Shown here: positions 1,761 through 63,507 of the stretch, in pieces
Layout of the letters: each line of letters starts with the position of its first letter
How positions within the stretch are numbered: position 1 is the first letter of the stretch
From: Epiperipatus broadwayi
Lineage: Eukaryota; Animalia; Onychophora
Assembly (NCBI GenBank): GCA_028023455.1
Contig: JAQFVV010000010.1
Span: forward strand, 8,184,001-8,248,000
Length of the DNA: 64,000 nt
Direction of reading: 5' to 3'
Made by a program: the position numbers and the translations under genes
The notes under the pieces: model-generated
What the model was told of the DNA's origin: nothing
The model's database searches: none
Seen by the model: only the letters and a program-made list of their open reading frames with translations

Positions 1761-3899
1761 AAATTTTAACAAAGAAATAACACACGTATAACATAAATAA
1801 GACTTTATTTTCATATATATATATATTGTAACTATAATAAGGGTTATACTACAATACTAGAAAAAAAAAGTTTAATAAAACTCAGTGATTGACTAATAAA
1901 TGTACAATCTGCGCACGTGTCACTTGAGAATATACTGCCTAAAGGTTAAAAGAAAAATTAATTCATCCACATTATTAATATTATTAAATATTTACTTTGT
2001 GATATGTAAGGCAATAATAAATCACAATGTAAAAGGAAGAAAAAAAAGTACTTTTGATATGCAAAAGAATTGCATAGTTTTTATTTAAAAAAAAAAAAAA
2101 TTAAATTCAAACCTTATTTAATCTGCCTTTCAAATGGAAGGTATAATTAAAGAACGCATCCATTTTTATAGAAAATCAAATGGTGGATTTGAAAAAAAAA
2201 TTAAAATATTATAATTGATAACAGTTTATAAGTCATAATTAAAAAAGTAAAAGTGGACAGTAAATTTTCTTAATATATTAATGAAATGTAAATAAAGAGA
2301 GAAAAAGACAAGCTATTTGTATCTCTTTTTCTCTTATTTATAAAAAAATACATGATATAATGTAATAAAATTTGTATCCACAAGTAATCAGAATGTTTTT
2401 CAAAAAAATATATTGTTGTAATGATGCAAATATCATATATCCCCTAGCTGGTGACATATATGATGTTTGACAACCATGTTGTTTGAACAAGATTAGTTGA
2501 TTATAAATAGGTTGGAATCAAGCAATTAGACATTATTCTTATTACTATCATTTTAATTCTAAAAATCCAGCAGTTCATTCCATACTTTACATTAGAGTGC
2601 ATTCTAGTACTGAAGCCATAGTGCCATGATTCATGCTGAAAAAACAGCAATCCATGATTAAAACTTTCCCCCCACCCTAAGCCATATTTTACTGACTGTT
2701 TTTAAAGTATTTTTCAATAGTCCAGTTACAACAATCAGTATGATGCATTTATTTAGAAGAAATCAATTTACCATGTGTGACTAAATAACCATCACTCACT
2801 CCAGTCAAAACAATCTGGAAAATGCGGTCAGATCCAGAAATTAGTATTGAAGTTCAAAAAATCAGCTTGTGCAACACCTCTATAATGCCATAAAAGAAAT
2901 GGCTAGTGCCATATAAATTAATCAAGATCTACAGAACATCACTAGTATTTCTATATTTATTCTCTCTAACATCACCAGTATTCAAGAAGTAGACTATCAT
3001 TGGAAAAAACTAAGGAAGATAAGAATAAAATATTAAAAGAATGATACCTGAAAAAACCATGGTTACTGTTTTCCTATTTAACATAGTAAGATCATATCAT
3101 TATAAATGCTATAAAGGCCCTAAGATTAAACTCAAATTATCTTTTGTTACTGTAATGCTTTTGTGTGTGTGTCAAGAGTTGAAATGATATACACAACCAT
3201 TTTATTTATCTATTATTAATAAATTGTTAAATATTTTTTTATTAATCTATTTAGTTGCGTTTTTAACTAATATATGCTTTTAATATGCATATGCTAGCTA
3301 ATATTCACAGCCCTGAGAAATCATACAAACTATTGCAGGGCATGCTGGGATGGCAGTAATAATTGATGATTATCATTCCTTTAAAAACTTTTCCAAAAGT
3401 AAACTCTTTTTATGAAGTTTGCACTTTTGAGTTTGTATTTTTAGATTATAAATCATCATCATCATCATCACATTAATTAATATTATTATATATCTGAATT
3501 AAAATTTCTATTTGAATTTTATTACCCATTCAATTTATTATTTATTTGAACCAACATGTGCAGTACATATTTTTCATTTAATTTAAATTAAAATACCATA
3601 TTGGACATTTTTTTATCATTGCATAATTGGTAGAAACAACATTTCGAAATATGAACATCCCTTTATTTTCTTAAATTTCAGTCTTGTATGATACATATTG
3701 CACAAGCAACTTTGTGGCTTGAACATTCCATGCTTATTCCAACACAATTGTCAAATCATATCCAATTAGTATTTGGTATAATAAAGCAAAGTTATCAAAA
3801 GATTGTTAGTGTTTATTATAATCAAATATTAATATTAAAATTTAATATTTAAATTGAATTTATGGTTAATGAATTTTAACTATAATTAAGCAAATCACT

Positions 3900-15160: not shown

Positions 15161-15921
15161 ATTACCATCGGACATCTATTTATTACTAAACCTTATACTA
15201 GATGGTAATGAGATTGAAAGAAAATTGCTAAAATTTATTTTTGTCAGGTTCCTAGCAGTTTAACAAATTTTAAAAATGAATTCATTCTTAAGTAATATGA
15301 TTGTAAGCTGAAAATAGCTCTTTTAAAAAAAATAACATTGTTTCACCGCATCACCTTTAAAAATTTATCTTAAAATAGTCATCCTACACAATTTTTAAAA
15401 AATATTTTAAACTATTTCCTTTGGATATTTAAATTAAAATTTTAGGCATATCTTTATTACTATCTTTCCTAGTAACATTTTTAGTTCAGTCTCTTAATTC
15501 TGTCAATAACATCACTTATACCTGCTTATTATTTCATATATACATTTTACTTTTGATTCATCCTTGGTAATTTCAACAAACAATTTCATACTTCAATAAG
15601 TGTCATTCATTTTATTAAAATTTTACATCTGTGACCTATAAGTAATGACTATGATTCAACACATTACATATATATAATTCTTTAATTTATTTTTAACAAA
15701 AGCACTCCCCAAGTTTAATTTTGGTTAATTTTAATTATGATGTTTTTATGCAAATTAATAATTTATCCATATATTTATAATTGCATATATAACAATACAA
15801 ATATTTACTTTATAATTTAATAACCAAAACTCATGGCTAACTATACAACTGTTCTGATCAGATTATTCCTTGGATAAACATTATTTTTTGAAAATGTATA
15901 TTTTTGCATGGTAGGTAATAT

Positions 15922-29141: not shown

Positions 29142-29148
<7 letters not shown>
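28943..29148. repeat. Perfect 99-bp inverted repeat with 8-bp spacer
   Basis: 28943-29041 is the exact reverse complement of 29050-29148 (checked base by base). Spacer gttatata. Confidence 0.97.

Positions 29149-29208
<60 letters not shown>
29144..29208. repeat. (TA)n microsatellite at the RTE 3' junction
   Basis: Uninterrupted TA run. Confidence 0.98.
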
Positions 29209-29219: not shown

Positions 29220-32207
29220 TTAACCATTATCAATCCACTGCAGGATGAAGGTCTCTCCAAGTTTAATCCATCTTCTCCGATCTTTAGCTTCTCTTCTCCA
29301 CATCACCCCTACACATTTTCTTATTTCATCCATCCACCTTACATGTGGTCTCCTTCTAGGTCTTTTACAATCTCTTGGAATCCAGGTTAAAATTTCAATT
29401 GTCCATCTATTATCATCTCTTCTAGCAATATGTCCAGCCCAACTCCACTTCAATCTTTTAATTTTTTCAATGAGGTCAGTAACACCTGTTTGTTCTCTTA
29501 CCCATACATTGCGTTTTCGATCTCTTCTTGTTACTCCCAACATACATCTCTCCATACTTCTTTGAGTGGTCTGAAGTCTCTGTATTGATCTTCTATTAAG
29601 TATCCAAGTCTCAGATCCATAAGTAAGAACTGGTAAAACACATTTGTTAAAAACCTTTCTTTTCAAACACATAGGCATATTTCCTTTTAATATCAAGTTA
29701 TTTCTACCAAAAGCACTCCAACCAAGTTTAATTCTATGATTAATTTCCTCTATTATGTTTCCATCTGTATTAATAATCTGACCAAGGTATTTGTAACTGT
29801 TAACTTCTTCTAATTCATCATAATCAATCTTTATTTTCATATTTTGAGCAAATCGATTAAACATTACTTTAGTCTTTTTAACATTTATCTTTAGTCCTAC
29901 TTTCCTACTTTCATCTGATAACTCCTGCAACATTTCCTGCAGCTCGAAAGCATTATTTGCAAAAACAACTACATCATCTGCGAAATCTAAATGACTTAAA
30001 TAATCTCCATTTACTTTCACTCCTTTAGTTTCCCATTTTAATCCACAAAATACTTCTTGCAGCACTGCTGTAAAAAGTTTTGGAGATATGGAGTCACCTT
30101 GTCTTACACCTTTCTCAATGTTGACTTTCCCAGTATCATTATGTAATCTAATTGTTGCTGTTGCATTTTTATAAATATTCTTTAAAATATGACAATATCC
30201 TGGATCTATACCTTGATGATCCAATGCTTTAATCACTGAAGAAATGTTTATAGAATCAAATGCCTTTTCATAATCTACAAATCCAAAACATAATGACAAC
30301 TCATATTCATTTGTCCTTTCTATAACTTCTCTCAATACTTGAATATGATCTACTGTACTAAAACCACTTTTAAATCCAGCTTGTTCTCTTGGTTGGTGAA
30401 AATCCAAGGTTCTCTGTAGACGAGTTGTAATTATCTTGGTAAAAATTTTATATAAAACTGATAAAAGGCTGATAGGTCTGTAATTTCTAATATCTTCTTT
30501 ATCACCTTTTTTAAATATTAATATTATTACTGCATTCTTCCAATCATCCGGTACATCTTTATCATTTAGACATTTGGTATATAACTTTGCTAATATTTTT
30601 TCTGTTTCTTCACCTGCTTCTTTTAATATATCAATTATAATTCCATCATTACCGGGAGCCTTTCCTTTTTTCATACATTTAATTGCATTTCTCACTTCTT
30701 CATTTAAAATTCTGGGCAATTCGGAAGATGTAATAGATATAGGAGGTACTTGTTCTTTATTACTATATAATTCTTGATAAAAATCTTCTACCAATTTCAT
30801 AATGTCATCCCTCTTTTTAGTAATAATTCCATCTTTTTTCCTTATTGCAGATATAAATTTCCTACCAATATCAAAATGTTGTTTTACATTCTTAAGACTT
30901 TTATTTTCTTCTACAGCTTTTCTTGCTAGTTCACAGTTATACTTTCTTATATCATTTTCAACTCTTTTCCGCACCATTTTACAAAATTCGAGATATTCAA
31001 TTCTTTTTAATGCATCATTCTTGCATATCTTCATATTCCTTCTTTTCTTCATAAGTTCTCTAGTCTCAGTAGAAATTTTATTAGTCAATTGCTGCTTTTT
31101 TCTACCAGCTATCTTTGTTGCAGTTTTTAAAAGTGTATCAGTTATTTTTATATTAATTTCATTCAAATCTGAATCATGTTCAAAATCTACTAATACTTGA
31201 AACCGATTTGTAAGTTCTAATTTAAATTCATTAGAATGTTTCTGAAGATTAGGAATATCAACTGTAAATATGGTTTTTCTTAATAATTTTTGTCTCTCTA
31301 GTTTTACATTAACATGTATCTTACCCCTTACTAATCGATGATCACTTCCTGTGTTAAATTTATTAAGAACATTACAATCTTGAAATATGTATTTCCTGTT
31401 AGTCAAAATATAATCCAATTCTGCTGTACCTTCATTTGGATGCTTCCATGTCCATTTCCTTCTAACATTTTTCTCAAAAAAAGAATTCATAATATAAAGT
31501 TTTTCCTTCTCTGCAAACTCCACAAGTCTATGTCCTCTGTCATTTCTATTACCATAACCAAAATTACCTACAACACTTTCATCTTTCATTTGTTTACCAA
31601 TTCTAGCATTAAAATCTCCCATAACAATTTTAAAATGTTGTTTACTCTGATCAAAAGCCTTTTGTACATCCATATAAAAATCTTCTACTACTTCATCACT
31701 GTGAGAACTTGTTGGGGCATAAACCTGAATTATCTGCATTTGATATCTGCTATTAAGTTGTATAACTAATCTTGCCACTCTGTCTGATACACCATCAATC
31801 TCCACAATATTGTTCTTCCACTTTTTATTTATAATGAATCCTACTCCACTTGTATTTCCAATATTTGTGCCTTTATAATAGAGCATATGTCCACTTTTTA
31901 AATCAATTGTCTCTTCACCTTTTCTTCTAACTTCACAAAGTCCAATAATATCCCATTTAATATAAGAGAGTTCTTCTTCTAATTCTTGCAATCTTCCTTC
32001 ACTTGAAAGTGATCTGCAGTTGTAAGTACCTAAATAAAAAGTCGTCATCAAATGGCAGCCTGGGTCCGCCTCCAGGATATTCTTAGCACCCTCCGCCTTC
32101 GGCCACCAACGGCTGCCTTGGTTGGTGACTTTACAGCCTCCTGGGATTAAGGGCCATGCTTTATTTTTGTCTGTCATAATTGTATAATTGGGAAAAATCT
32201 TTATCAT
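29220..32207 (-). CDS. RTE ORF: AP-like endonuclease plus reverse transcriptase, 995 aa, uninterrupted
   Basis: APE motifs [33 protein letters not shown]; RT motifs [25 protein letters not shown]; RTE-type C-terminus [11 protein letters not shown]...RW. Confidence 0.97.
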
Positions 32208-32336
32208 TTACACAAACATTCATTCTGCCTTATCAGGCACTGAGAAGAAAGACCATGGTGTTTCTTGATCTTAAACTCAAAGGTAAAATGCCAATAAACT
32301 TACCACGCTGGCTAATGCGTGTTGGTGAGCAGCCCA

Positions 32337-32497
32337 TCCATGTTCGTATACTATATGAATAAACATATAGTAATAACAGCTGCAACGACAAGAACGTATG
32401 GAGTGGACATTAGGAATTTGCCCTGCTCGGTTCCTTTAAGGCCTCCAAGAGGAATCAAAGGGTCTCCTTTCAGTTAATAGCAAACTCCTTTCTGCAG

Positions 32498-32499
<2 letters not shown>
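32337..32499 (-). ncRNA. HDV-like (CPEB3-type) self-cleaving ribozyme in the RTE 5' UTR
   Basis: P1 GGCTGCA(32499-32493)/TGCAGCT(32384-32378) with G1.U; 90-nt J1/2; P2 TCCAT/ATGGA; P3 ACG/CGT; L3 TTCTTGT; G32377 for P1.1; P4 TACTATATG/CATATAGTA (9 bp); J4/2 A-C(32346)-GAA. G1 coincides with the element's 5' boundary. Confidence 0.85.

Positions 32500-32561
<62 letters not shown>
32500..32561. repeat. (TA)n microsatellite at the RTE 5' junction
   Basis: Uninterrupted TA run of ~62 bp. Confidence 0.98.
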
Positions 32562-32564
<3 letters not shown>

Positions 32565-32765
32565 TGTAATTATAACTGTCTACTGCAGGATGAAGATGTT
32601 TTCCAAATTTAATTCAGTTTCTCTAATTTATAGCTTTTTTCCTCATCATGTTGCAAATGTTCATATTTCATTAATCTCTATCATGGTATTTTTTGAGCTC
32701 TTTACAAATTTTGGGATTCTGTTTAAATTTTAGTTATTCATCTAGTACCATCTTATCTAACAATA
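32562..32765 (-). mobile_element. Old 5'-truncated RTE 3'-end fragment
   Basis: ctactgcaggatgaagatgttttccaaatttaattc... aligns with the RTE 3' end at 29225-29430; heavily diverged. Confidence 0.75.
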
Positions 32766-32850
32766 TTTTATTTATACAAATTATAATAAAAATAACATTT
32801 CTTTTATGTAATATGCACACACACAAATATCAGATTATAACTTAATTTAC

Positions 32851-33004
32851 CTGCACTGTTGTTTCCACCATAACCATTTTTACCTTCTGGTGATAGATCT
32901 AAGTTCTGACCATCACTTAGATTAATATTCGATAGTCTGGAATATGACATTCCACCTCCACCACCGGCCACAACAAGAAGAGTAATTTTTCCTTTTTTAT
33001 TTTT
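32851..33004 (-). CDS. Alk: Internal exon of an ALK/LTK-type receptor tyrosine kinase (glycine-rich extracellular domain)
   Basis: tatacag|AAA AAT...AGT GCA G|gtaaatt; 154 bp, phase 0 to phase 1. Encodes KNKKGKITLLVVAGGGGGMSYSRLSNINLSDGQNLDLSPEGKNGYGGNNSA(G), resembling ALK ...VPLIIAAGGGGRAY...GLNGNSGAA(G). Orthology is recognised from memory; a stand-alone Gly-rich-domain gene cannot be excluded. Confidence 0.75.
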
Positions 33005-33800
33005 CTGTATATAACATACAATCAAATTATAAAAATTAGTGAGCTGTTATATAAAAATAATTAATATTATATATTGATGTATTATAAAGTATATGTATAA
33101 TAATACTGATATGAGTTCCTTAAAGTTTGTAATGTGTCTAAACATTAAGAATACAAAATAATATGCATCTTAAAAAATATAAATAATGAAAAACTTTTTT
33201 GAAAATAATAAAATGTTATTGATTAATTATAATATTGAATCATTTTTTCTATTTACATTAAAATCAGATTTTAATGATATAATAGAATATATTCTAAACA
33301 TCATTAGAACTTGCGATTTTGTAATGATATTTTAATACAATACCAAAACTGTTGCTGCTTTTCTGTGATAATTTTATAAACACTGAGAAAAAATTGACAT
33401 ACAATTTAGTAATGTATATATCAAAACAAAAATTCTCAGGAACTAAAGATATAAATGCCATATTATCTCATTTCATCTGTATATAATTTATTATATCAAA
33501 AATATACACCGACATTCTGATTGGGTCACTCTGATCTCTACATAGCATCTTTAATTATGTATCATATAATATAACCTTTTATTTGCAATAAATATGCTTT
33601 AAAATGTTGATGTATAAAAATTTTGAAAGTTATATAAAAAAAAAAAGCAGGTAAAAGTAATAAAAAAAAAACAAAAAAATTATTTAGATTAACGATTTTT
33701 TAAAAAATATTTAAATAGATAATTTACATGTATCATCATATTCGTTGACACAATCTGACCTTTTAAGCATCTCAATGGCTTCTCTTATCTTACATTATAG

Positions 33801-38700: not shown

Positions 38701-38796
38701 GCAGAAAGGGAAACTTGGAATATTTTGCTGTAGATAAGATTAAATTTATTCATGATTTGTTATTATTATAGAAAATTCAATGTATTTATGTGGAAT

Positions 38797-41425
38797 CATC
38801 ATCATCAACTATTATCATCCACTGCAGGATGAAGGTCTCTTCAAGTTCAATCCACATCCAATCATTAGCTTCTCTTCTCCACATCACTCCTGTACACCTT
38901 CTTATTTCATTTATCCATCTCACATGTGGTCTCTTTCTAGATCCTTTACATGGAATACAGTTTAAGATTTCAATTGTCCATCTATTATCATCTCTTCTAG
39001 CAATATGTCCAACCCAACTCCACTTCAGTCTTTTAACTTTTTCAATGAGGTCAATAACTCCTGTTTGTTCTTTTACCCATATATTGTGTTTTCGATCTCT
39101 TCTTGTTACTCACAATGTGCATCTCTCCATACTTCTTTGAGTGGTCTGAAGTCTCTATATTGCTCTTCTATTAAGTGTCCAAGTCGCAGATCCATAAGTA
39201 AGAACTGGTAAAACACATTTATCAAAATCTTCCTTTTCAAACACATAGGCACATTTCCTTTTAATATCAATTATTTCTACCAAAAGCATCCCAAACAAAT
39301 TTAATTCTATGATTAATTTCATCCATTATGTTTCCATCTATATTAATAATTTGACCAAGGTATTTGTAGCTGCTAACTTCTTCTTACTCACCACAATCAA
39401 TCTTTATTTTCATATTTTGAAAAAATTCATTAAACATTACTTTAGTCTTTTTAACATTTATCTTTAGTCCTACTTTCCTACATTCATCTGATAACTTCTG
39501 CAACATTTCCTGCAGCTCTACAGCATTATTTGCAAAAGCAACTACATCATCTGCAAAATCTAAATGACTTAAATAATCTCCATTTACTTTCACTCCTTTA
39601 GCTTCCCATTTTAATCTAGAAAATACTTCTTGAAGCAAAAAGTTTTGGAGATATGGAGTCACCCTGTCTTACACCCTTCTCAATGTTGACTTTCTTAGTA
39701 GCATTATGTAATCTAATTGTTGATGTTGCATTTTTATAAATATTCTTTAAAATATGACAATATCCTGGATCTATACCTTGATGATCCAATGCTTTAATCA
39801 CTGAAGAAATGTTTATAGAAACAAATGCCTGTTCATAATCTACAAATCCAAAGCATAAGACAACTCACATTCATTTGTTTTTTCTATAACTTCTGTCAAT
39901 ACCTGGATATGATCTACTGTACTAAAACCACTTTTAAATCCAGCTTGTTTTCTTGGTTGATGGAAATTCAATGTTCTCTGTAGAGGAGTAGTAATTATCT
40001 TTGTAAAATTTTTGTATAAAACTGATAAAAGGCTGATAGGTCTGTAGTTTTTAATATCTTCTTTATCACCTTTGTAAAATATTAATATTAATACTGCATT
40101 CTTGCAATCATCTGGTACATCTTTAGCATTTAGACTTTTGGTATATAGACTTTGCTAAAAAAATTCTATTTCTTCACCTGCTTCTTTTAATATATCAATT
40201 ACAATTCCATCATTATCTGGAGCCCTTCCTTTCTTCATAAATTTAATTGCACGTCTGACTTCTTCATTTAAAATTCTGGGCAATTTGGAAGATATAATAG
40301 ATATAGGAAGTACTTGTTCTTTATTACTATATAATTCTTGATAGAATCTTCTACTCATGATGTCATCTCTCTTTTTAGTAATAATTCCATCTTTTTTTTT
40401 ATTGCAGATATAAATTTCCTATCAATACTAAAACATTGTTTTACACTCTTGAGACTTTTATTCTCTTCTACAGCTTTCCTTGCTAGTTCACAGTTATACT
40501 TTCTTATATCATTTTCAACTCTTTTCTGCACCATTTTACAAAATTCAAAATATTCAATCTTTTTTAATGCATAATTTTTGTATCTCTTCATATTCCTTCT
40601 TTTCTTCATAAATTCTCTAGTTTCAATAGGAATTTTATTGGTCAATTACTGCTTTTTTCTACTAGCTCACTTTGTTGCAGTTTTTAAAAGTGTATCAGTT
40701 ATTTTCATATTAATTTTATTCAAATCTGAATCATGTTCAAAATCTACCAATACTTGAAACCAATTTGTAAGTTCTAATTTAAATTCATTAGAATGTTTCT
40801 GAAGATTAGGAATATCAACTATTGTTTTCTTAATATTTTTTGTCTATCTAGTTTTGCATTAACACATATCTTACATCTTACTAATCGATGATCACTTCCT
40901 GTGTTAAATTTATTAAGAATATTACAATCTTGAAATATGTATTTTCTTTTAGTCAGAATATAATCCAATTCTGTTGTACCTTCATTTGGATGCTTCCATG
41001 TCCATTTCCTTTTAAAATTTTTCTCAAAAAAAGAATTCATAATATAAAGTTTTTATTTTTCTGCAAACTCCACAAGTCTATGTCCTCTCTCATTTCTATC
41101 ACCATAACCCAAATTATACAGCACTTTCATTTGTTTACCAATTCTAGCATTAAAGTCACCCATAACAATTTTAAAATGTTGTTTACTCTGATCAAAAGCC
41201 TTTTGTACATCCATATAAAAATCTTCTACTACTTCATCACTATGAGAATTTATTGGGGCATAAACCTGAATTATCTACATTTGGTATCTGCTATTAAGTT
41301 GTATAACATATACTCTACTATAAAGGCACAAATATTGGAAATAAAAGTGAGTAGAATTCATTATAAATAAAAAGTGGAAGAGCAACATTGTTGAGATTGA
41401 TGGTTTATTAGACAGAGTGGCAAGA
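38797..41425 (-). mobile_element. Degenerate 5'-truncated RTE copy with a 5' inversion
   Basis: Colinear with 29209-~31780 but frameshifted; (TGA)n tail at 38797; inverted segment ~41307-41428; 11-bp TSD ttatgtggaat at 38786-38796 and 41426-41436. Confidence 0.95.
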
Positions 41426-49469: not shown

Positions 49470-50160
49470 AATTTCAATCATCTCTCCAAATTCAATCCAT
49501 CTTCTCTGATCTCTACTTTTTTATTTTACATTACTCCAACACACTTCCTTATTTCGTCCATCTGTCTCCCATGTGAACTTTTTCTAGATTTTTTTAAAAA
49601 TTTTTTGGAATTCAGTTGAAGATTTTGAGAATCCAGCTATTATCATCTCTTCTAGCACTATGACTATCTCAACTCCAATTCAGTCTCTTGATTCTTTTAA
49701 TGATGTCTAATACCTGTTTGTTCTCTCATCCATGCATTTCATTTTCAATCTCTTGTTACTCCTAATATGCATCTCTCCATACTTTTCTGAATGGTCTGAA
49801 GTCTCTATCTTGCTCTTCTGGTAAGTGTTCAAGTGTCAGATTCATAAGTAAGTAGTAAAACATATTAATTAAAAATGTTCATTTTCAAAAATATAGACAA
49901 ATTTACCTTTAATATTATATTATTTTAAGCAAAAGCACTCCAACCAAGTTTAATTTTATGATTAACTTTATTATGTTTCTATCGGTAATAATAAATTCTT
50001 CAAGGTATTTGTAATTGTTAAAATCTTTTAATTCATCATTATCAATCATTATTTTCTTCTTTTGAAAAAATCCATTGAACATTACTTTAGTTTTTTTAAC
50101 ATTTATCTTTAGAACTTTTGCAACATTTCTTGAAGATCTAAAGCATCATTTATAAAAACA
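49470..50160 (-). mobile_element. Old 5'-truncated RTE fragment (~0.7 kb of the 3' end)
   Basis: Aligns with 29260-29980, e.g. catctctccatacttctttgaatggtctgaagtctct and aaaagcactccaaccaagtttaat. Confidence 0.9.
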
Positions 50161-50349
50161 ATTACATATAAATTGGAATAGCATTCATGGAAAAAAAGTT
50201 GTAAGAGATGCCAGTTTTTATTTTTTAAATTTTGGTATCTATAAAGAAAGTTTTGGGATAATGCTATCTTGCTTTAAGAAAGTTACAATATCATTATAAT
50301 GAAGGACCTTTGATCAATTCCATCAAAAAAAAAAAAACCTGTTTAACAG

Positions 50350-63408: not shown

Positions 63409-63507
63409 GTCAAGCGTTAGTGGCCTAGTGGTTAGCATAGTTGCCTTCCAAGCAGCTGGCCCTGGTTCGCTTCCTGGTCAATGCATTTGACACATAAAAA
63501 TATATAT
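63409..63507 (+). mobile_element. Retroposed tRNA-Gly(TCC) copy / SINE
   Basis: 63414-63485 closely resembles metazoan tRNA-Gly(UCC) (GCGTTAG...GTTGC-CTTCCAA-GCAGC...GGTTCGCTTCC) but has acceptor- and T-stem mismatches and T-loop A58 changed to C. GTCAA leader, TTTGACACAT-A tail, and 13-bp TSD atatcacagcctt at 63396-63408 and 63508-63520. Confidence 0.85.

Follow-up and report, generated by a model that had tools for sequence, protein, structure and literature searches.

A probable HDV-like self-cleaving ribozyme at the 5' end of an intact RTE retrotransposon

The minus strand of positions 32499-32332 very probably specifies a self-cleaving RNA of the HDV-like class, located at the very 5' end of an intact RTE non-LTR retrotransposon. 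The window, henceforth the whole 64,000-nucleotide stretch of Epiperipatus broadwayi DNA that was analysed, contains at 32499-32337 a complete HDV nested double pseudoknot, read directly from the minus strand with its elements in the canonical order P1-J1/2-P2-P3-L3-P3'-P1'-P1.1-P4-J4/2-P2'. Its first base, G32499, is also the first base of the 3.3-kb LINE, which carries (TA)n on both flanks, and cleavage is predicted immediately 5' of this base. The HDV-like identity put forward in the initial annotation is upheld by the uniqueness of the structure in the window, by compensatory changes in elements that are ~35% diverged in DNA, by an invariant core and by genomic copies ending at G32499.

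Anatomy of the predicted ribozyme and its element

The positions of all features are collected in Table 1. Every pseudoknot element that had been reported on the minus strand was found again in order upon re-reading, including the 7-bp P1 with its G1.U wobble, the 3-bp P3, L3 UUCUUGU, the single C-G pair of P1.1, the 9-bp P4 and C32346. The first G had been described as abutting the (TA)n flank, and A32500 indeed opens a (TA)n run. P2 had been given as 5 bp; this inner helix stands, but pairing goes on past C32403 to a total of 10 bp (5+5, with a 1-nt bulge). Because P2 continues beyond the bulge, the ribozyme extends to 32332, ~168 bases from G32499, and J1/2 measures 84 nt instead of the 90 nt (32492-32403) claimed before. 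The separate folding attributed to J1/2 was retained, with an MFE of -29.5 kcal/mol, a z score of -3.2 and 77% of the ensemble.

An AAAGG/CCTTT helix proposed within J1/2 was not recovered: both the MFE and the consensus folds instead pair CCCUUUG with the downstream UUAAAGG, a pairing kept in the relatives described below. AAAGG/CCUUU (32456-32469 minus; columns 31-35 and 40-44 of alignment A3) is an alternative, mutually exclusive pairing inside J1/2 that is also possible in the related loci L001 and L002, with a U-to-C change matched on both candidate partners, and it may represent a second conformer or coincidence. The two deviations from the HDV fold that had been listed, the single P1.1 pair and one extra C before the 3' strand of P2, are real. 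Their weight against a ribozyme is probably small. CPEB3 shares the weak P1.1. The extra C (C32342) separates CGAA from P2 in each of the four family members and so would be tolerated or used, although it departs from the canonical J4/2 length.

The element was described as intact, which agrees with an open ORF retaining every residue that is invariant across 15 aligned RTE proteins; in the same alignment it keeps the reverse transcriptase FADD and endonuclease SDH motifs. Pfam placed Exo_endo_phos at residues 60-290 and RVT_1 at residues 570-812, with an overlapping Exo_endo_phos_2 and nothing else, and found no RNase H domain in the 995-aa ORF. Among named proteins, its nearest relatives are endonuclease-reverse transcriptases of psyllids and Lepidoptera (42-55% identity), the nearest Atlas clusters are arthropod, and the 3' UTR of the relatives described below consists of (GAT)n. 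Judged by its single-ORF layout, domains, short 3' UTR and similarity, the element fits the RTE clade.

Table 1 Features of the predicted ribozyme and of the RTE element, in window coordinates.
Feature	Position	Strand	Description
5' flank, (TA)n	32500-32561	minus	abuts G32499; outside the ribozyme; run begins at A32500
P1	32499-32493 with 32384-32378	minus	GGCUGCA with UGCAGCU; 7 bp, G32499.U32378 wobble first
J1/2 domain	32409-32492	minus	84 nt; P1.2-like irregular hairpin with several internal loops
P2 5' strand	32398-32408	minus	GUCCA, bulged C32403, UCCAU
P2 extension	32408-32404 with 32336-32332	minus	GUCCA with UGGGC; beyond the 1-nt bulge C32403
P2 inner part	32402-32398 with 32341-32337	minus	UCCAU with AUGGA; 5 bp
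P3 hairpin	32385-32397	minus	ACG 32397-32395 with CGU 32387-32385
L3	32394-32388	minus	UUCUUGU; U32394, C32392 and G32389 are the invariant positions
P1 3' strand and G32377	32377-32384	minus	G32377 follows UGCAGCU 32384-32378
P1.1	C32392-G32377	minus	one C-G pair; second position U.U
P4 hairpin	32349-32372	minus	32372-32364 with 32357-32349; 9 bp, UUUAUU loop; variable peripheral helix
J4/2	32348-32342	minus	UACGAAC; predicted C75-equivalent (C75/C57) C32346
P2 3' strand	32332-32341	minus	AUGGA and UGGGC
Rest of 5' UTR	32208-32331	minus	contains the conserved block ~32290-32331
ORF	29220-32207	minus	995 aa; AP endonuclease and reverse transcriptase
3' UTR	29219-29207	minus	13 nt after the stop, TAAUGAUGAUGAU (also given as UAAUGAUGAUGAU)
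3' flank, (TA)n	29144-29206	minus	follows the 3' UTR

Descriptor searches, related elements and genomic copies

A strict descriptor demanded a G in first place, a P1 of 7 bp (three or more of them GC), a P3 of 3 bp (two or more of them GC), U[UC]C at the head of L3, a G following P1, five or more pairs in P2, and C[AGU]A within J4/2. Its sole match on both strands of the window (128 kb) was 32499-32337, and ten dinucleotide-shuffled versions (1.28 Mb) yielded none. With a looser descriptor of our own design, hundreds of matches arose in the AT-rich window; it is therefore non-specific, so that the motif alone is weak evidence unless combined with the strict terms and the comparative data. Scoring against the Rfam HDV/CPEB3-type covariance models, proposed at the outset as a check, gave no support. 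The HDV-type families (HDV_ribozyme, CPEB3_ribozyme, drz-agam-1, drz-agam-2-2 and related families) gave no match at the gathering score in the window and none at E <= 10 in 32250-32560 or in L002 60-300. This failure is expected from the long J1/2 insert and the pseudoknots; it is still a failed test. The Rfam matches that were obtained (mir-1277 and a pestivirus UTR among them) were rejected as (TA)n-driven noise.

The relatives compared were loci L001, L002 and L118-120, the last three reached via the P0003 cluster, with proteins 57-60% identical to the window ORF. Each begins with (TA)n or a short TA run, followed by G(G)GCUGCA and an alignable 5' UTR. DNA identity to these relatives is 65-70% in the ORF, 63-71% in the ribozyme region and 80-85% in the core columns. 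RNAalifold, run on three sequences, recovered the multi-helix J1/2 domain and the continuation of P2; within this extension an A-U pair is reversed to U-A in L001. When a covariance model was trained on the window, L001 and L002, it recovered L118-120, which had been used in deriving neither the structure nor the model, at 127.8 bits (E 2e-32) and had no match in 19 other RTE loci.

Pairing was counted in a model-fitted alignment (A4) of four distinct sequences, to which P1 and P1.1 had been added as pseudoknots. Standard pairs occupy 93.8% of the pair cells, compared with 32-46% when the partners are slid, with the J1/2 helices and the P2 extension derived from three of the four distinct sequences. 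Covariation was found among these sequences: pairing is kept and 18 of 52 pairs are changed on both sides, a number reached by 0 of 500 shuffles and set against 0-5 in the slid versions. Compensatory changes affect 12 of the 23 J1/2 pairs. All ten P2 pairs are formed in every sequence (100%), three with both sides changed, and pairs 4 and 5 read AU/AU, AC/GU, GC/GC and GU/AC. The third P3 pair is G-C in some members and C-G in others; P3 is imperfect in L001, where an A.G lies beside two C-G pairs. P1 itself is without variation in the four sequences, and the G1.U wobble is common to all of them. In L002 (99-252) the register of P1 and P3 moves by one base (GGGCUGC/GCAGCCU and ACC/GGU) and the wobble is preserved.

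L3 reads UUCUUGU in the window, UUCACGU in L118 and UUCUCGU or UUCCCGUU in the remaining members, that of L002 being 8 nt long; the P1.1 C-G pair is present in all four. The invariant single-stranded positions are U1, C3 and G6 of L3 and A-C-x-A-A-C of J4/2 (alignment columns 160, 161 and 163-165), the intervening G being replaced by C in L118 (ACCAAC). P4 ranges from 9 bp in the window through 8 bp with a bulge in L001 and 6 bp in L118 to absence in L002, which is the expected behaviour of a dispensable helix. L002 is a natural P4-less member, with only GUUUAAGACGAAC between P1 and P2. In L118-L120 (73-240), the 1036-aa product is predicted by gene callers to begin at an AUG within the ribozyme J1/2; in this lineage the reading frame runs uninterrupted across the 5' UTR, which it does not in the window copy.

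Downstream of the ribozyme, the block at ~32290-32331 (minus; CACCAACACGCAUUAGCCAGCGUGG) is conserved in L001, L002 and L118 and recognisable in L117. It has a weak consensus fold (-9.9 kcal/mol) with no covariation bonus. A DNA pattern derived from the block gave only chance matches in GC-rich bacterial MAGs, which were rejected, and no match in viral contigs.

Beyond this family, the 5' regions of the nearer protein relatives P0004, P0005, P0007, P0008, P0014 and P0033 (loci L083-L086, L116 and L117) were unalignable to the ribozyme by the model and, for L083-L086, by nhmmer. A metagenome protein scan returned mostly distant RTEs (~30% identity), in none of which a homologous 5' UTR was detected by nhmmer or, for 19 loci, by the covariance model; a viral-contig protein scan gave no match. 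Possible HDV-like arrangements were noted by eye in two loci with ~52% protein identity. In L085 (60-240) CCCCUCC...GCC-UCAUCGG-GGC-GGAGGGG directly follows (TA)n, and in L005 (1-70) ACC-UUCCCGU-GGU stands at the contig start with a 9-bp P2. Neither candidate was called by the covariance model or the strict descriptor.

Logan contigs of four public runs (labelled RNA, a label that is unverified) were compared with 31800-32511. Each run held 462-2353 matching contigs, of which 36-457 were at least 99% alike; the RTE family is therefore high-copy and partly recent. These contigs also lend indirect support to the earlier description of the window copy as young. Loose ends lie just beyond 32499 in 14 contigs of run X8 and 17 of X19, with further ends at 32497 (12 in X19) and 32498 (4 in X20). 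The flanks beyond the copy ends are heterogeneous and AT-rich (agreement 0.5-0.6), and contig depth falls ~10-fold in the last bin. This pile-up of ends against differing flanks means that independent copies end at the predicted cleavage site, the contig ends being ends of DNA or RNA copies, as distinct from mapped RNA 5'-OH termini. The window copy departs from the majority of contigs at several places, P4 positions 32363 and 32366 among them, and 73 further places are variant.

Other RTE sequences were observed in the window. An old 3' fragment at 32579-32766 (minus) shares 70% identity with element positions 3069-3266 and stops directly before the (TA)n run; the intact copy thus seems to have been inserted into a TA tract behind an earlier insertion. 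The same RTE is present in 5'-truncated form (91% identity) at 38795-41307 (minus), and the adjoining 41306-41428 matches element positions 610-733 in inverted orientation, an inverted head that looks like twin priming. Further 3' fragments lie at 49481-50167 (minus; 77% identity) and 15684-15762 (minus; 76% identity). A Gly-rich ORF at 32804-33025 (minus; VVAGGGGG...) had no Pfam match (E <= 1) and no PDB sequence match. A borderline tRNA match was observed at 63414-63485 (plus strand), with 29.7 bits against a gathering score of 29.

Every family member seen (the window copy, L001, L002 and L118-L120) is bordered at both ends by (TA)n or a short TA run. One 5' flank is common to L118-120, whereas their three 3' flanks differ, beginning ATATATA, ATAT and ATA. 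These flanks suggest a preference of the family for TA-rich targets; insertion of lepidopteran RTEs has been described as not sequence-specific (PMC2887409).

Proposed function and alternative readings

By analogy, the most likely function is the published one, release of the element RNA from a longer transcript with G1 as its first base. The element, with no demonstrated promoter, would be transcribed within a longer RNA that is a host transcript or arises by read-through from DNA upstream. In the emerging RNA, P1, P3/L3, P1.1, P4 and the 10-bp P2 would form the nested double pseudoknot, with the 84-nt J1/2 hairpin and the long P2 holding P1 and P2 side by side. C32346, together with Mg2+, would then catalyse scission, the 2'-OH of A32500 attacking the phosphate on the 5' side of G32499. 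The released RNA would start with a 5'-OH at G32499 and could serve as the template for target-primed reverse transcription, so that each full-length copy would again begin at G1 and carry the ribozyme. A possible second role is cap-independent translation of the ORF 126 nt downstream, as reported for this ribozyme class. Cleavage itself, co-transcription and the role in translation are what we infer from these data; the element may be active, and cleavage would set the 5' end of its RNA.

The scission predicted here is read from sequence, which leaves a small chance for a conserved 5' UTR fold that does not self-cleave. Such a fold could be IRES-like, could bind the protein that the element itself encodes or could serve as a DNA-level internal promoter, with G32499 as the transcription start. 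It would suit the conservation of J1/2 and the downstream block in sequence as well as in pairing, which exceeds what a pure 'pinch' helix needs. The conserved positions are, however, exactly the HDV catalytic set (G1.U; U1, C3 and G6 of L3; C followed by AA in J4/2; P1.1), every member has its boundary at the first base of P1, and IRES or protein-binding roles in this class have been reported alongside cleavage, not in its place. About equally improbable is a working family ribozyme whose catalysis has been lost or strongly slowed in the window copy, or in its subfamily, by substitutions of its own. The departures of this copy from the contig majority, in P4 among other places, speak for it; against it, the pairs of P1, P2, P3 and P4 are all intact, the invariant core is present, the majority variant A32366 to G would still pair as G.U, and the intact ORF argues for a recent insertion. 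A chance match to an HDV descriptor in AT-rich DNA deserves hardly any credence. The hundreds of loose matches and the missing Rfam match speak for such a coincidence, but the strict descriptor found nothing in the 1.28 Mb of shuffles and 18 compensated pairs recur across diverged elements, so that coincidence is in practice refuted by the comparative data.

A wider reading adds to self-cleavage a homing of this RTE lineage to (TA)n microsatellites, including the TA tails of earlier copies. Head-to-tail arrays would result, in which the ribozyme would resolve read-through, and J1/2 with the downstream block would constitute a second functional module serving, for example, cap-independent translation or recognition by the element's own protein. 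This reading is unlikely. The preferred reading remains that of an HDV-like ribozyme heading the element.

Significance and comparison with known systems

RTE elements headed by HDV-like ribozymes are already established, the kind having been known since 2009-2011, and current understanding is unchanged by the present case. Ruminski et al. (2011, JBC 286:41286; summarised in PMC6765202) reportedly described ribozymes of the HDV-like type heading non-LTR retrotransposons of the RTE and baggins groups. The ribozyme predicted here pinpoints the 5' boundary of a high-copy, apparently recent RTE family, an aid to annotation, and its natural variants, from a 9-bp P4 to none, could serve structure-function work.

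A review lists HDV-like ribozymes in RTE and baggins elements, where they free the element RNA from a longer transcript and possibly aid translation (PMC6765202). As described, these published ribozymes share with the window ribozyme the slot (starting where an APE-type LINE lacking a promoter starts), the proposed role and the fold class. In contrast to them, the window family is without an Rfam match and, in the examples seen, sits behind (TA)n or short TA runs. R2 ribozymes (Eickbush and Eickbush 2010; PMC3774820) are likewise HDV-like, lie at the LINE 5' junction and cut the element out of a co-transcript, again the same slot. R2, however, has a restriction-like endonuclease and is confined to 28S rDNA, whereas the window element is an RTE of the APE type, scattered over sites that are AT-rich or (TA)n. 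In Schistosoma mansoni, the RTE-family LINE Perere-3 carries a 5' self-cleaving ribozyme in the same functional slot, but it is a twister variant and thus of another ribozyme class (PMC8501958). The element itself resembles lepidopteran RTEs, which have a 990-aa ORF, a 276-bp 5' UTR and a 14-bp 3' UTR (Tay et al. 2010; PMC2887409), in its single ORF and simple-repeat 3' UTR.

The periphery of the ribozyme is closest to that of drz-Agam-2-1 and drz-Agam-2-2 (Anopheles gambiae, RF01788), which likewise have a large structured J1/2 (P1.2) and an extended P2, of 12 bp in drz-Agam-2 and 5+5 bp in the window. In drz-Agam-2-1, P1 and P2 are 'pinched' by a stable helix in J1/2 and by the 12-bp P2, which make scission almost 1000-fold faster (Webb et al. 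2016, PMC4908430). The window ribozyme differs from drz-Agam-2 in having no covariance-model match at E <= 10 and a J1/2 in the form of an 84-nt irregular hairpin with several internal loops.

L3 of the CPEB3 ribozyme is UUCACGU. The L3 of L118 is identical to it, while UUCUUGU of the window differs at two positions. Mammalian CPEB3 (RF00622) further shares with the window ribozyme a 7-bp P1 with G.U first, a J4/2 with CGAA and a weak P1.1, which in the active CPEB3 ribozyme consists of one G-C pair and a U.U (PMC4836649). CPEB3 is single-copy and intronic with a short J1/2 and a 4-nt J4/2, whereas the window ribozyme belongs to a multicopy LINE, has an 84-nt J1/2 and carries the conserved extra C after CGAA; C32342 is absent from both HDV and CPEB3. 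Taken as predicted, the window ribozyme resembles a CPEB3-like core joined to a drz-Agam-2-like periphery and would offer a clear example from nature of a large ribozyme of the HDV-like type with this composition.
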